Shown here in pieces: positions 28,585-52,019 of a stretch of DNA of 61,737 nt. Position numbers and translations under genes: made by a program. The notes below the pieces were generated by a model that was not told the origin of the DNA, ran no database searches, and saw only the letters and a list, made by a program, of their open reading frames with translations. Each line of letters begins with the position of its first letter. Positions within the stretch are counted from its first letter, which is position 1. Where the stretch lies: positions 26,303,948 to 26,365,684 of the forward strand of contig NC_068998.1 of NCBI RefSeq assembly GCF_001194135.2. Reading direction: 5' to 3'. This stretch comes from Octopus bimaculoides (lineage: Eukaryota).

Positions 28585-29262
28585 CAATCATCAATACATG
28601 CACAAACGGGAGTAACAATCGATGCACCCTTTGTGGAGTTCACACCGAAGATATCACCCTTATCATAAGCAGTTGTCCGAACATGTCATCACGTTATTAT
28701 CTATTGATGAGACATGATGTTTTAACTAGTACACTCTATAATGAAATCCATCGGAAGGATGACTCCGAGGACAAAGAAATAGGAACCCACAGTGTGGTAG
28801 AAGCCACAGCCACTCATAGTAAAAAATGAGTACTGGTAGAATGTCCCAGTGAACACCTTAATAAAATATAAGCACAACAGACCTGACCTGATAAAATGGC
28901 TTGGGATAGAAAAGCGAAATTGTCCACAGTTGTGGAAATTAGCTGCCCAGTGAATGTTAACATATAGCTGAAGATCAGTGAAAAAGAGAATACCTTCGCG
29001 AACTATGGAGAAACCTGCTGTTACTCTATCCAGATTACAAGTTCATATTTATACCTGTAATTATTGAGGCCCTGGGATTTGTAACACATTGCCTAAATAC
29101 CAATCTTGAGAAATTCGAAGACTACAGATCCAATCAATCACTGGAGCTGTAAAAATCTGTAAACTTTTCCAGAAATTTATCATTTAAATATATATGATCA
29201 TGTCTATATATGCAACTATGTGCATGAGAATACATACATAAAGTAAAACATACAAATCTTCA
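28585..29262 (+). mobile_element. RLE LINE, lineage B (copy B1), flanked by (CATA)n
   Basis: CTLCGVHTEDITLIISSCPNMSSRYYLLMRHDV (CCHC), HNRPDLIKW, TVVEISCPVNVN, LLYPDYKF, ALGFV, GAVKICKTFQKFII stop 29187. (CATA)n at both junctions. Confidence 0.88.
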
Positions 29263-29281
29263 CATACATACATACATACAT

Positions 29282-29783
29282 CAGAGGACAAAAGTCATCG
29301 ACTCTTGTAGAGGTTAGTTAACCAACGGATGTGAATGCACACTCAAAAGTCCAGGGAAAAAAGAACATTTATGGCGAATTAATGTGGAACTTACTCATCT
29401 TGTACGCTGAATACAAATTCTCATTTGCGCCTATCATTTTAGGTGCATTAGGTTATGTACCAATAAATTTGTACAAAAGACGAGAAATGCTCAGTTTCAC
29501 AAAATAAAAAGCAAAAGAAAATGGCGCAGTTCTTCCAAATGCAATGTATCATTGGCACAGTGAATATTTATAAGATATTCCAAAAATTCTCCACCTGAGA
29601 TTCTTTTGTGAATAGATGCACACACTTGGATGTATGCATCGATAGTTCAACCAACACACCAACTCAACCACATATTTACAAACACTGCGAAATATCTTAA
29701 CCCCAAAAGTCTTGTCGCTTTGTTAGCGACCGGGTTGAATTCTCCTAAGTACTTCAATAGAAGTCAAAGAAGTATCATACATA
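29282..29783 (+). mobile_element. RLE LINE, lineage B (copy B2), tandem with B1
   Basis: Coding end and 3' UTR align with 38280-38761 (gatgtgaatg..aaagtccaggg..catttatg..gcattaggttatgtaccaa..aagatattccaaaaattctcc..caactcaaccacatatt..aaagtcttgtcgcttt). Ends catacata. Confidence 0.85.
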
Positions 29784-30211
29784 TTTCAACGAATCATTGG
29801 AGAGTAATTGCTGCAAATAGCTATATAAATTCACTCGTTCAGCGAACTAGTTGCTAGTTTCTGATGAAAAAAGCAATAAATATAGCAAGCTTTTATTTTG
29901 TATTAGTGGTAATAGAAAAACATGGGGTTACCTAGAGTTTTTACTTTTCATAGAATGATAAAGAAAGTGCGTTTACAAGAAACAACTCCTTAATACATAT
30001 ATGTACATGCGTGTGCTCGCACGCGTGTGGTGGGTATTAAAACTGAATAGTTATCTCGTGACTCGAGCTTCACGCCAATACTATCTTAAGGCGAGAATTG
30101 TTAAAACTCATTTTGATGGAATAAATATATATTATTTGGTTTGGATGTGGTCTCTTGCTCCTATCTATCTATGTATCTATCTATTTATCGTCTGTCTATC
30201 TATCCATCTGT

Positions 30212-30596
30212 GGAGGCGCAATGGCCCAGTGGTTAGGGCAGCGGACTCGTGGTCATAGGATCGCGGTTTCGATTCCCAGACCGGGCGTTGTGAGTGTTTA
30301 TTGAGCGAAAACACCTAAAGCTCCACGAGTCTCCGGCTGGGGATGGTGGCGAACCCTGCTGTACTCTTTCACCACACAACTTTCTCTCACTCTATCTTCC
30401 TGTTTCTGTTGTGCCTATAATTCAAAGGGTCAGCCTTGTCACACTGTGTCACGCTGAATATCCCCGAGAATTACGTAAAGGGTACACGTGTCTGTGGAGT
30501 GCTCAGCCACTTGCACGTTAATTTCACGAGCAGGCTGTTCCGTTGATCGGATCAACTGGAACCTTCGACGTCGTAAGCGACGGAGTGCCAACAACA

Positions 30597-30598
<2 letters not shown>
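30212..30598 (+). mobile_element. tRNA-derived SINE, family 3, full length, inserted in (TCTA)n
   Basis: A-box tggcccagtgg, B-box ggtttcgattcc, body ending gcgacggagtgccaacaacaa. (TCTA)n on both sides. Confidence 0.88.
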
Positions 30599-30627
<29 letters not shown>

Positions 30628-30734
30628 NNNNNNNNNNNNNNNNNNNNNNNNNNNNNNNNNNNNNNNNNNNNNNNGTTCCGTTGATCGGATCAACTGGAAC
30701 CCTCGACGTCGTAAGCGACGGAGTGCCAACAACA

Positions 30735-30801
<67 letters not shown>

Positions 30802-31714
30802 AATGCACACCTATGAAAGTTCTACCAATTATTGATGATAAATATATATAACAGATTGACTCTTTAAAAAAGAAATATTATGACTGTGATAAAATAATGA
30901 AAGCAATATTTACTAAGCTTTTTACAAAGAAATAGTTAAACGTAAAATACCATAAAAATTATTAGAATTGGGAATCAAATGTGGAAATACTATCGAGTGG
31001 CTAGCAGAAAACCGCCCGGGGGTGGCCTCTCTGCTAGTATATATAATTAAGATTTCGTTGAATTAGTTACTTAAATTGAGGCATCTCGCTAGGTCTGTAT
31101 AATCAGCATACCCAAACAATATTAATTGAATACTGAATATCAAGATTCCGTCCAGGGGTGTTTACTCTTGGTAATTCAGACATGTACTTTTTATAAAGGT
31201 ACTTTCTATAGCATTTTCGAAATGCAGATTCTATAGTATTTTCGGAGTGCATACAGGTGAATGAAATATAAATGAGTAATAAAGATGTACAAGTGTCAAT
31301 TCATTACAGTCGTTCCAAGCGACTCTTTTAATTGATAGAAACCGTTCTCATTTGAGAGAAACCGTTCTTGTCAGATGACCGCATAGACTTCAGACATAAA
31401 AGATACAAACATTTATTTATCATATTCGAATCAATAATGGAAATCAAAATATTTATGTTGTTTCTTTTGTCATATCTATGGCAGAATATGACAAGATTCA
31501 TGTATGTAAGTATATATTTAGAGAGAGAGACAGGGGGATAGATAGGAAAGAGATACGTATACACATATATATATGCATGTATACATAGATATACTTATGT
31601 ACATATGCATATATATTTATAAATATATACATATACAGATATATTTATATGAATATATGGGTGTGTGTGCGTGTGCGTATGTCTGTGTGTGTATGTGTGT
31701 CTGTGTCTGTGTCT

Positions 31715-49599: not shown

Positions 49600-50100
49600 C
49601 AAAGGTGGATCACAATAAACACAAAATAATAAACGCGAGAAAGACGTCCAAAGAGAAAAGAATGAAGAGGATTTAAATTTTAATCATGGACTTTTTCAAC
49701 AAGCACAGTCGGGTTATGAAATTAAACTTCCTAGTCTGCTTCAAAAGAAGACTTCTAAACCATTACACAATACTATCATTCGCCTACAGATCGGAAACGT
49801 GGATCTTAACAGTAGACATAGAGAAGAAACTGACAGCGTCAGCACAAAACTGGGAAAGATTAATGCAATAGAGAAACAAAAAAGTAACTGAAAGACAAAC
49901 AAAAGCGTAAAAACATGAAAGAAAGTAGACGATATATTCATCATTGTATAAACGACGGAAATATCACGAAATGGCGACCAATGACTGAAAAAATAATGAA
50001 GACCACGAAAAGATGGCGCGTCGTGATTGACAGTACTAGAGTAGCGTCGTTTAAAAGGTAACACGCAAGGGAGATTAGGAAAAAACTGGCGATGTTATGG
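49600..50100 (+). mobile_element. RTE-clade LINE fragment (thumb region), decayed
   Basis: CFKRRLLNHYTILSFAYRSETWILTVDIEKKLTASAQNWERLM matches the RTE pattern CLKRKVFNQCVLPxxTYGSETW..AQRxMER. A WRP motif follows. Confidence 0.75.
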
Positions 50101-50267
50101 TGAAACTTTCATCTAACAGTAGATCGACAGCAGTTAACTACAATACGTAACTACATAAATATCAAAGTAATATATATGTATCTATATAACAATATATGCA
50201 CTCGCACTAATGTGCACACACATACAAACACACATATGAATATATATATAAATACATACTTCTATGA

Positions 50268-50317
<50 letters not shown>

Positions 50318-50846
50318 GGAGTGGAGCTGAAAGTTTCCACACCGGGAAAAATCGAATAGCAACTAAATCAAAATTATAAATAATAAATATATATATATCT
50401 GGAAACGCTACACCATTTTGTACTGAATGCTATCTTCTTTCGTTTTCAAAATGCAACTTTTGGACATGTACGTCTGTGTGCGCTTCCTTATGCGTTTGTT
50501 TGCATTGGCAGATACATTACAACGCCACAGACCATACTATGTTCCATCCCAGCATTTAATAGTTTCAGAAGTTTCTATCGGAATAATGTTCATCCGTTAA
50601 ACTGTCCTCTTTTATCTGGCTGGACAGAGAAGATAAAATGCTTACAATTGATCCTGACGCTATCTCACTCTATCAGAAATAGCATTTTCACATGGTCAGT
50701 TATCTGTAATTATAAATTTGCATAGACGTACACGCATATAAACACGCACGTATTCACTCACGTGCACTACACAAAATCTCTCTCTCTCACTCTCTCTCTC
50801 TCTCTCTCTCTCTTTCTTTCTCTCTCTTTCTTTCTCTCTCTTTCTT

Positions 50847-50878
<32 letters not shown>

Positions 50879-51024
50879 CCATACACACAATTACGTACCC
50901 ATTTAGATACAATATATAAATGATTATGAGTAAAGATATATACGTTTGCTTGTGTTTGTATGTACGTCTGTCTGTAAAGATGTGTGTGAGTGTGAATGTG
51001 CATGTACGTATACATATTCTATAT

Positions 51025-51300
51025 CTATGTGTTTAGAATATTAAGTAAATATATAAGTATGAATCTGTGTATATATATTATGTATGTATATATACATATA
51101 TAAATACATATGTATATATATGCATCTGTATGTATGTATGCATGTATGTTTGTATGTATGTATGCATGTATGCATGCCTGTATGTATGTATGTACGCATG
51201 CATGCACATATGTATGTATGCGTGTGTGCATGTATGTATGTATGCATGCTTGCATGTATGTATGTATGTATGTATGTATGTTTGTATTAGGTATGGATGG
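51025..51300. repeat. (TATG)n/(CATG) compound microsatellite
   Basis: Direct reading. Confidence 0.96.
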
Positions 51301-51304
51301 CTAG

Positions 51305-52019
51305 ATGTATGTTCTCTTCCGTTTTAATTATTTAAATTCTTTCACTGAGGAAGGACCTGCTTTTTAACAACGCTACAAACCTCCATTGTTGGAATGCAGA
51401 TAACGAAAATAATGTCACATTTTAAACTTGAGAATAAACTTGCATATTTTTACTGTTCCACTTACAGATTGTATTCGAAATGTGCGAGATAGTTTGTTGA
51501 TTTCGTTTTCTGAAAATCAAAGCTCATCCTGATTTTTAGGCGTTTACTCACAAAACCAAGAGCACCAACTCTTATTGGTATAAGTGTGAATTTGTAATCT
51601 GGATATAGAAGCTGGAGGTTTCGAAGCAGTTGTCCAAGGTTATCCTCTTACGCTTGGATTTTCAATGAAATATCCACACCAGTAGGACAGCTGGCCTCTT
51701 TTGACGGTACATATATTTTCTTGTCGGCCCCAAACTACAGTATCTGGCATGTTATATTTACACTTGACATGCTTTGATGTGAACGTCCCACAAGTATTTC
51801 TTTTGTTGATGTTTGTATATGCATTCAATAACAGGAATATTTATTCCAGGGCAATATTATATTGATTTTATATTCATTTTCTATTGATTTTACGACAGCG
51901 TCGTGTCGCATAGGGAGGTAAAACCTTGATGACATTTTTCGTCAGCTGTCGTGTAATGTCTTACTCAGAAATATGACATAATCTACATTTTTGTATGCAC
52001 CTTGGAGCTTGAAGGCTTC
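51305..52019 (-). mobile_element. RLE LINE, lineage B (copy B5), both ends in (CATA)n
   Basis: KMSSRFYLPMRHDAVVK, KCKYNMPDTVVWGRQENICTVK, ALGFVSK, RIQSVSGTVKICKFILKFKM stop 51415. The 3' UTR runs into (CATA)n and the 5' junction follows (CATA)n. Confidence 0.85.

Follow-up and report, generated by a model that had tools for sequence, protein, structure and literature searches.

Introduction

Several long interspersed nuclear elements (LINEs) insert specifically into microsatellites. Dong of Bombyx mori, DongAg of Anopheles gambiae and DongBg of Biomphalaria glabrata, which encode a restriction-like endonuclease (RLE) and are usually placed in the R4 clade, are specific for (TAA)n (PMC3812793, PMC3636483). 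According to the citation in PMC4640811, some leech HERO families are microsatellite-specific as well (Kapitonov and Jurka 2014, Repbase Reports). LINEs of the type with an apurinic/apyrimidinic endonuclease (APE) also include microsatellite-specific families, such as Mino, Kibi and Koshi (PMC3812793, PMC3636483, PMC4640811); among the R1-clade LINEs, Waldo (WaldoAg1/2, WaldoFs1) is specific for (ACAY)n (PMC3812793). In the annotation of Octopus vulgaris, ‘Dong-R4’ is the most active LINE group, with five recently active families and 1129 insertions of ∼4.2 kb; ‘Hero’ LINEs are listed too, and targets are not discussed (PMC13282606).

We analysed LINE fragments in a stretch of 61,737 nucleotides of Octopus bimaculoides DNA (assembly GCF_001194135.2, contig NC_068998.1, positions 26,303,948 to 26,365,684 of the forward strand), called the window below. 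They are very likely dead, 5′-truncated copies of an RLE LINE family that inserts, with a fixed sense strand, in (ACAT)n microsatellites. Elements of this kind, Dong-like microsatellite-specific RLE LINEs, are already known, whereas the (ACAT)n target is new as judged from the open-access literature. A search there yielded no RLE lineage reported as specific for (ACAT)n or (ACTT)n (Repbase, Dfam, subscription journals and the large screen of genomes for site-specific retrotransposons by Fell et al. 2025 lay outside the search). The family is a candidate member of the Dong/R4 or the HERO clade.

The Dong group resembles the ACAT family in consisting of single-open reading frame (ORF) RLE LINEs with a fixed orientation and a simple repeat on both sides, and in having a mollusc among its hosts (DongBg, snail). 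The target of the Dong group is (TAA)n; that of the ACAT family is the tetranucleotide (ACAT)n and that of its sister lineages (ACTT)n, never (TAA)n. HERO elements, as far as the secondary source describes them, share with the ACAT family the RLE, microsatellite targets and a lophotrochozoan host. They could be compared by description only, as could Togen, an RLE-type, NeSL-related and (TG)n-specific element of fish.

LINE fragments in the window follow ACAT repeats on their own strand

An earlier note, made from the letters of the window alone, had recognised five LINE fragments with common motifs. Translation recovered all five in the places given, some of the motifs being present as near variants. 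F1 (28587–29260, plus strand) is decayed and 5′-truncated and runs from a zinc knuckle through the RLE to the stop codon and a short 3′ untranslated region (UTR). F2 (29283–29783, plus strand) is 5′-truncated, starts in the middle of the RLE and continues past the stop codon into the 3′ UTR, its last bases being CATACATA (29776–29783). F3 (37834–38762, plus strand) is the longest and has a near-open RLE region; its N-terminal part, ∼100 amino acids ahead of the zinc knuckle, reads ..IDRKSSFSW..GYAFAIQEQEI.. and its last bases are CATACATAC (38754–38762). F4 (48630–48996, minus strand) is truncated at both ends and spans IYNAIRK.. to GALGFV, while F5 (51305–52019, minus strand) is 5′-truncated and extends from the zinc knuckle through RLE and stop codon to the 3′ UTR.

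When read across stops and frameshifts, each of F1–F5 encodes the same C-terminal LINE region. The order of its motifs is a CxxC..H..C knuckle, MSSRYYLPMRHD, EYWW, N(K/R)PD, VVE(I/V)SCPxDVN, LLYPDY, GALG(Y/F)V, GTVKICK and the stop codon, with knuckle/RLE motifs visible in F1, F3, F4 and F5. At the DNA level, F2 and F3 are 73% identical and F4 and F5 76.5%; F1 matches F5 weakly, over 73 bases only. The conceptual proteins of the other fragments are 38–43% identical to that of F1. On these comparisons the five fragments are homologous but represent several subfamilies rather than one. F1 differs from the consensus of its own family at ∼5% of sites. Logan contigs of the same species reproduced F1 from 28652 to 28954 with 0 differences and covered the 3′ junction of F2 into unique flanking DNA (29711–30233). 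Related proteins are annotated in both O. vulgaris and O. bimaculoides.

We marked ACAT tracts on each strand as any 12-mer that matches (ACAT)3, in any phase, with no more than one mismatch. Such tracts occupy 1.4% of the strand-positions of the non-N window, or ∼2.8% of its bases with both strands counted, and for a position drawn at random, strand-aware, the probability of a tract within 5–40 bases upstream is 0.016–0.031. At all five fragments, a same-strand tract lies at zero distance from the 5′ end (P ∼1e-9 to 3e-8). That of F1 (28562–28586, plus strand) is imperfect, its extent being that in the assembled sequence. The next, (ACAT)5 at 29261–29282 (plus strand), serves F1 as its 3′ tail and F2 as its 5′ flank, the two copies standing head to tail. 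F3 follows a compound (CA)n/(ACAT)n tract (37730–37833, plus strand) of which 37807–37833 is ACAT proper. The two minus-strand copies likewise have ACAT on their own strand, in a tract that directly adjoins F4 (48997–49028, minus strand) and a long array that directly adjoins F5 (52020–52268, minus strand). The claim that every 5′ junction comes after same-strand CATA repeats, minus-strand copies included, therefore holds for 5/5 copies, with an enrichment over the background of the window.

The truncation points differ: F3 begins ∼100 amino acids before the knuckle, F1 and F5 at the knuckle, F4 in the interval between knuckle and RLE, and F2 inside the RLE. Since the point of truncation varies while the tract always abuts it, the 5′ tracts are not internal element sequence. 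At the 3′ end, F1 terminates in its (ACAT)5 and F5 in a degenerate tail that leads into a long ACAT array (51078–51304, minus strand), and F4 is truncated. No fragment touches a TAA tract, as had been stated earlier; the TAA tracts of the window lie between 5691 and 23308.

A sixth and more decayed fragment, F6 (∼36900–37470, plus strand), reads from SHLQ..AKQEKE.. to ..ENIY. No 5′ end can be defined for it, and on the 3′ side unrelated sequence interrupts it. Where F6 breaks off, at 37470–37520, there is a perfect inverted repeat (tccgatatatatcggga..tcccgatatatatcgga). An 18-base unit, CGAACCAAACGAATCTCT, is repeated in tandem about seven times at 36580–36720, beside a 10-base gap.

A distant RLE lineage in the window is associated with (TAA)n

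The window contains four further RLE copies, all decayed and on the plus strand (5707–6290, 15295–16995, 17198–18624 and 20197–21487). Wider extents of 5707–6539, 15295–17135 and 17198–18891 were also recorded for the first three. They have the same knuckle and RLE layout as the ACAT family at ∼25–40% amino acid identity, and carry the signature KPDI..IDx..D.N..KY..L..E..W. In the RLE itself, their IDx..D.N..KY contrasts with VVE(I/V)SCPxDVN..NIY of the ACAT family. At the boundary or end of 3/4 of these copies is (TAA)n, the arrays running on as (CAA)n or (TGA)n, and none of the four has an ACAT neighbour. These copies thus behave like Dong. The (TAA)n target of Dong proper was not found in the ACAT family, and the TAA copies are a separate, distant lineage. 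In a neighbour-joining tree, which was made without bootstrap and is only indicative, the window fragments group with the protein P0001 and the TAA copies fall outside. The suggestion of a second RLE lineage, distinct from the (TAA)n copies, is borne out by its own repeat, the low identity and this tree.

Because the distant copies in the same window pair only with (TAA)n, the association with a repeat is a property of the lineage and not of the region. This bears on an explanation in which the elements insert anywhere and survive in microsatellite-rich, gene-poor DNA, the proximity to ACAT being regional. The window is indeed repeat-rich, with the share of ACAT-type tracts given above, and for Drosophila, the proximity of Waldo-A and Waldo-B to CA repeats has been explained in this way (PMC3812793). 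However, the junctions are precise to the base and always on the same strand, TAA relatives are never at ACAT and the ACAT lineage is never at TAA within one window, and the pattern is repeated in unrelated hosts. We consider such passive accumulation very improbable.

Truncated copies throughout octopus genomes join ACAT directly

Contigs of two octopus runs were aligned to a sequence composed of the ACAT tract and F1 without the F1 tail. The best 15 of 205 joints all link the end of the tract (28581–28586) to internal positions of the F1 family, namely 28617, 28768, 28770, 28954, 29000, 29020 and 29022 together with 29048, 29086, 29090, 29112, 29113 and 29176. These joints are other genomic copies, truncated at many points and each lying directly after ACAT. 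With ACAT joined to at least 13 F1-family positions in octopus contigs, as well as the different truncation points in the window, the 5′ tracts proved to be external to the element. A wider layout, with contigs of four species placed on 28498–30600 or on F1 alone, was dominated by joints between microsatellites and by insertions and deletions in F1.

In four octopus species, the summed contig depth over F1 was 1e4–1e5 times the word depth of the single-copy flank, and the F1 family has roughly 1e4 copy-equivalents in the octopus runs. The depth over the 3′ half of F1 was several-fold above that over the 5′ half, and this is a LINE-type truncation gradient.

Copies with ACAT or ACTT repeats on both sides occur in other assemblies

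A profile of the five fragment translations retrieved intact relatives, and a search with one full-length relative yielded 683 further proteins, many of them intact ORFs of 1130–1200 amino acids. The DNA around 13 relatives (L001–L013) was examined. L001, L010, L011 and L012 come from long-read assemblies and L009 from the chromosome-level O. vulgaris assembly; L006 and L007 are one locus.

The ACAT-associated copies have sense-strand (ACAT)n at every 5′ end and at every 3′ end that is present. L001 is 5′-truncated and lies between (ACAT)44 on its 5′ side and (ACAT)3 on its 3′ side. L010, with an intact ORF of 1151 amino acids, follows (CATA)41, and its contig ends before the 3′ end. L011 is full length, has an open frame of 812 amino acids and is flanked by a (TACA)n complex and (ACAT)23. 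L012, with an intact ORF of 1197 amino acids, lies between (CATA)24 and (ACAT)40. L009 is a short 5′-truncated copy of the F1 family with ..CCATACATACATAC on the 5′ side and (ACAT)4 on the 3′ side, and L013 of Argonauta hians is full length, with (ACAT)9..(TACA)5 ahead of it and a ACATACACAC.. tail. Four loci of sister lineages, L002, L004, L006 and L008, carry sense-strand (ACTT)n on both sides; in L002, L006 and L008, which are independent and full length, the homology starts and stops at (ACTT)n.

A microsatellite-specific LINE is defined by independent copies, full-length ones among them, that have one repeat in one strand orientation on either side. This pattern was found in F1–F5 of the window, on both sides in L001, L009, L011 and L012, at the 5′ end in L010, and in the four ACTT sisters. 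The proposal of a (CATA)n-specific lineage gains from the recurrence of same-strand ACAT flanks in O. vulgaris, Argonauta and four long-read assemblies.

An origin of the junctions in misjoined contigs, at microsatellites of a gap-rich short-read assembly, has a negligible probability. The window assembly is of draft quality with many gaps and repeats, including 14 N runs, and contigs of the runs break at repeats. The junctions, however, lie in uninterrupted sequence: none of the 14 N runs is inside F1–F5, and the closest (27788–28497) leaves 64 bases between its end and the ACAT tract on the 5′ side of F1. Junctions of the same type are present in long-read assemblies, in the chromosome-level O. 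vulgaris assembly and in Logan contigs of several runs.

We also considered that the element might just have an (ACAT)n 3′ tail and insert without preference, the 5′ tracts being tails of older neighbours or products of synthesis during 5′ joining. The 5′ tract of F2 is the tail of F1, as this would have it, and the near-intact L011 has a direct repeat of 111 bases (4397–4507 and 8765–8875) outside both ACAT tracts, where a long target-site duplication would be. That repeat is composed of (GATA)n and ∼75 unique bases, is 90% identical between its two copies and occurs nowhere else in the examined DNA. It represents a very long target-site duplication or else a local duplication of greater age. 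The divergence of 10%, despite the open frame of 812 amino acids, fits better with a pre-existing duplication. Moreover, 5′ tracts occur without an upstream copy at F1, F3, F4, F5, L001, L009, L010 and L012, the 5′ tract is often far longer than the 3′ tail (44 versus 3 units in L001), and genome-wide, ACAT tracts are joined directly to many truncation points. A tail without target preference is thus improbable. On the evidence described here and above, this model, passive accumulation and assembly artefact were all rejected.

Several observations weigh against insertion in (ACAT)n. F2 and F3 end in just ∼2 ACAT units, in contrast to the clear arrays of F1 and F5; the 3′ ends of the window copies are weaker evidence than the 5′ ends. 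F6 has no ACAT flank, L003 of O. bimaculoides is an internal fragment without the expected flanks, and L005 of the ACTT lineage (3716–7100) lacks a repeat on the 5′ side; each of these three copies is truncated or rearranged. The ACAT tract of L013 lies ∼815 bases ahead of the start codon, and the 5′ boundary of that copy is unproven. The inner ACAT tracts of L011 could have come with the insert. The table of contig joints has no denominator and gives no share of genomic copies that are ACAT-flanked. No pre-insertion site was recovered, the arrays being too long for short contigs to bridge, and the F2 site is also filled in a second octopus species, a contig of which spans 29600–30015, showing that the F2 insertion is common to both.

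Other sequences were seen next to some of these copies. The 3′ UTR of L005 breaks off ∼340 bases early at a short sequence resembling a hairpin, after which comes (CTGA)49(GCCT)7(GACT)5. On the 3′ side of the L012 element, ∼600 bases of unrelated sequence (6900–7506) split the ACAT array into (ACAT)40 and (ACAT)37. The end of this insert near the second array looks tRNA-like by eye, on the minus strand, although ARAGORN gave no tRNA in it. Directly 3′ of the ACTT-bounded LINE of L006 and L007 are genes with matches to Pox_A32, a packaging ATPase, and DNA_pol_B_2 (L006 7431–11238 and L007 7423–11230, minus strand), which look like part of a Polinton/Maverick-type element.

The ACAT family is related to R2

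The window copies themselves are 5′-truncated and contain no reverse transcriptase (RT). The intact relatives have single ORFs of 1151–1203 amino acids, and in full-length relatives Pfam RVT_1 was detected with E=2e-25 to 3e-23, together with a weak zf-RVT match. No APE/Exo_endo_phos domain was found by Pfam in four intact proteins. Neither an N-terminal zinc finger nor an N-terminal Myb was detected by Pfam, and the N-terminus is not rich in Cys.

The best solved relatives of the family are R2 proteins. A profile of 39 family sequences gave an alignment to R2Tg (E=1e-51) that extends from the RT as far as the C-terminus and includes the knuckle (CRLC..H..C/RHD) and the KPD and (D/E)..K of the RLE. 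An AlphaFold (AF2) model of the C-terminal 262 amino acids had a predicted local distance difference test (pLDDT) score of 93. The top seven Foldseek matches of this model were all R2 structures, with template modelling (TM) scores of 0.66–0.73, and other PD-(D/E)XK nucleases came after them. The first R2 match had a TM score of 0.72 and a root mean square deviation of 2.5 Å over 247 columns. Two residues, D153 and K184, do not vary, and an E or D occupies position 168 in 38/39 sequences. Because of the R2 profile match, the predicted fold, the conserved residues and the lack of an APE, we conclude from alignment and modelling that the family is an RLE LINE of the R2 superfamily, and the earlier assignment to RLE LINEs agrees with this.

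Compared with R2 (R2Bm, R2Tg and R2Pm structures), the family has a homologous RT, linker, CCHC knuckle and PD-(D/E)XK RLE in collinear order and keeps the catalytic D, E/D and K. R2, however, has an N-terminal zinc-finger/Myb module and a ribosomal DNA (28S) target, and the ACAT family has neither; its flanks are microsatellites, which sets it apart from the R2 clade proper, and the RT identity is ∼20–25%. Waldo shares nearly the same target class, ACAY including ACAT, and orientation-specific insertion. It has an N-terminal APE, whereas the ACAT family is without APE and carries its endonuclease, an RLE homologous with that of R2, at the C-terminus. The target common to the two is a matter of convergence and not of common descent.

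Proposed mode of integration

The full-length element measures ∼3.9–4.4 kb and encodes one ORF of ∼1150–1200 amino acids, in the order N-terminal region, reverse transcriptase, linker, CCHC knuckle and PD-(D/E)XK endonuclease, and its RNA would end in (ACAT)n. On the strength of the homology to R2, integration would proceed by target-primed reverse transcription inside (ACAT)n, the element sense being on the ACAT strand. The RLE would nick the (ATGT)n bottom strand, and the freed 3′ end would pair with the RNA at its (ACAT)n tail and prime cDNA synthesis, which in stopping early may give rise to the variable 5′ truncations. Each insertion would leave ACAT repeats on both sides, turning one tract into two, and the new tail would be a new target. 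Head-to-tail pairs such as F1–F2 would be a consequence.

Indirect evidence of target-primed reverse transcription comes from the variable 5′ truncation, the constant 3′ end and the depth gradient along F1. We observed directly the anatomy of the copies, the homology of their RLE to that of R2, the strand-specific flanks on two sides in many copies and hosts, and the series of 5′ truncations.

Since an insertion splits an array and adds a tail, the family could help to spread ACAT arrays in cephalopod genomes. Such a spread would affect microsatellite markers and assembly gaps. The tetranucleotides (ACAT)n and, in the sister lineages, (ACTT)n join a short list of microsatellite targets of RLE LINEs, which holds the (TAA)n of Dong, the (TG)n of Togen and those of some HERO families.

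Apparent switch between ACAT and ACTT targets

We compared L004 (protein P0003), an ACTT copy, with L001 (protein P0006), an ACAT copy. Both are 5′-truncated with open frames (L001:9930–11110 and L004:7870–9010) and are 88% identical in DNA and 86% in protein. The 3′ UTR is common to both until immediately ahead of the tail, after which the repeats differ, as they do on the 5′ side. An ACTT copy so close in DNA to an ACAT copy points to an apparently recent change of repeat, and so to a target that can switch quickly. The comparison suggests that the tail of the RNA may weigh as heavily as the protein in the choice of target.

It is conceivable, though we regard it as unlikely, that specificity comes mainly from the RNA. 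The RLE would then nick loosely, for instance at a TA/GTA step common to the ATGT, AAGT and TTA repeats, priming would need pairing with the RNA's microsatellite tail, and an element with a changed tail would be retargeted. Apart from the L004/L001 pair, with its different repeats on both sides, this would account for the origin of the ACTT association twice inside the ACAT-flanked clade of the unbootstrapped neighbour-joining tree, and would agree with an N-terminus in which no DNA-binding zinc finger or Myb is detectable. In addition, changing the template RNA's homology arms redirects some R2 orthologues, according to the account of Fell et al. 2025 in PMC13586686. However, 14% protein divergence leaves room for a switch based on the protein, and target choice by R2 is protein-based. 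Only two sequences were compared, probably from different hosts, and the support is sequence comparison rather than biochemistry.

A broader version, in which the targets of the clade are set mainly by pairing with the RNA tail, making it naturally RNA-programmable, and in which ACAT specificity is ancient in cnidarian-like and cephalopod hosts, is more doubtful still. The switch between ACAT and ACTT at 88% identity is a natural system for finding out which of the two, protein or RNA, directs an R2-like enzyme to its target, a question that bears on R2-based gene-insertion tools.

Hosts and neighbouring sequences

Beside the L001 copy, at L001:2379–4295, is a Shaw-type potassium-channel ORF that is open across 638 amino acids. 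Relatives of this channel that have names are nearly all cnidarian (Hydra, Nematostella, Actinia, Dendronephthya, Clytia and Hydractinia). On the strength of these relatives of one neighbouring gene, the L001 host is probably a cnidarian. In that case octopods and Cnidaria would both have ACAT-associated members, and ACAT specificity would be either old or transferable, given the Octopus, Argonauta and probable cnidarian hosts.

In the window itself, ORFs with RT motifs (FLDFAKAFDKVDH) were noted at 7748–9668 on the minus strand, with an APE-like GDFNLP motif upstream on the same strand. The motifs suggest an unrelated LINE of the APE type.

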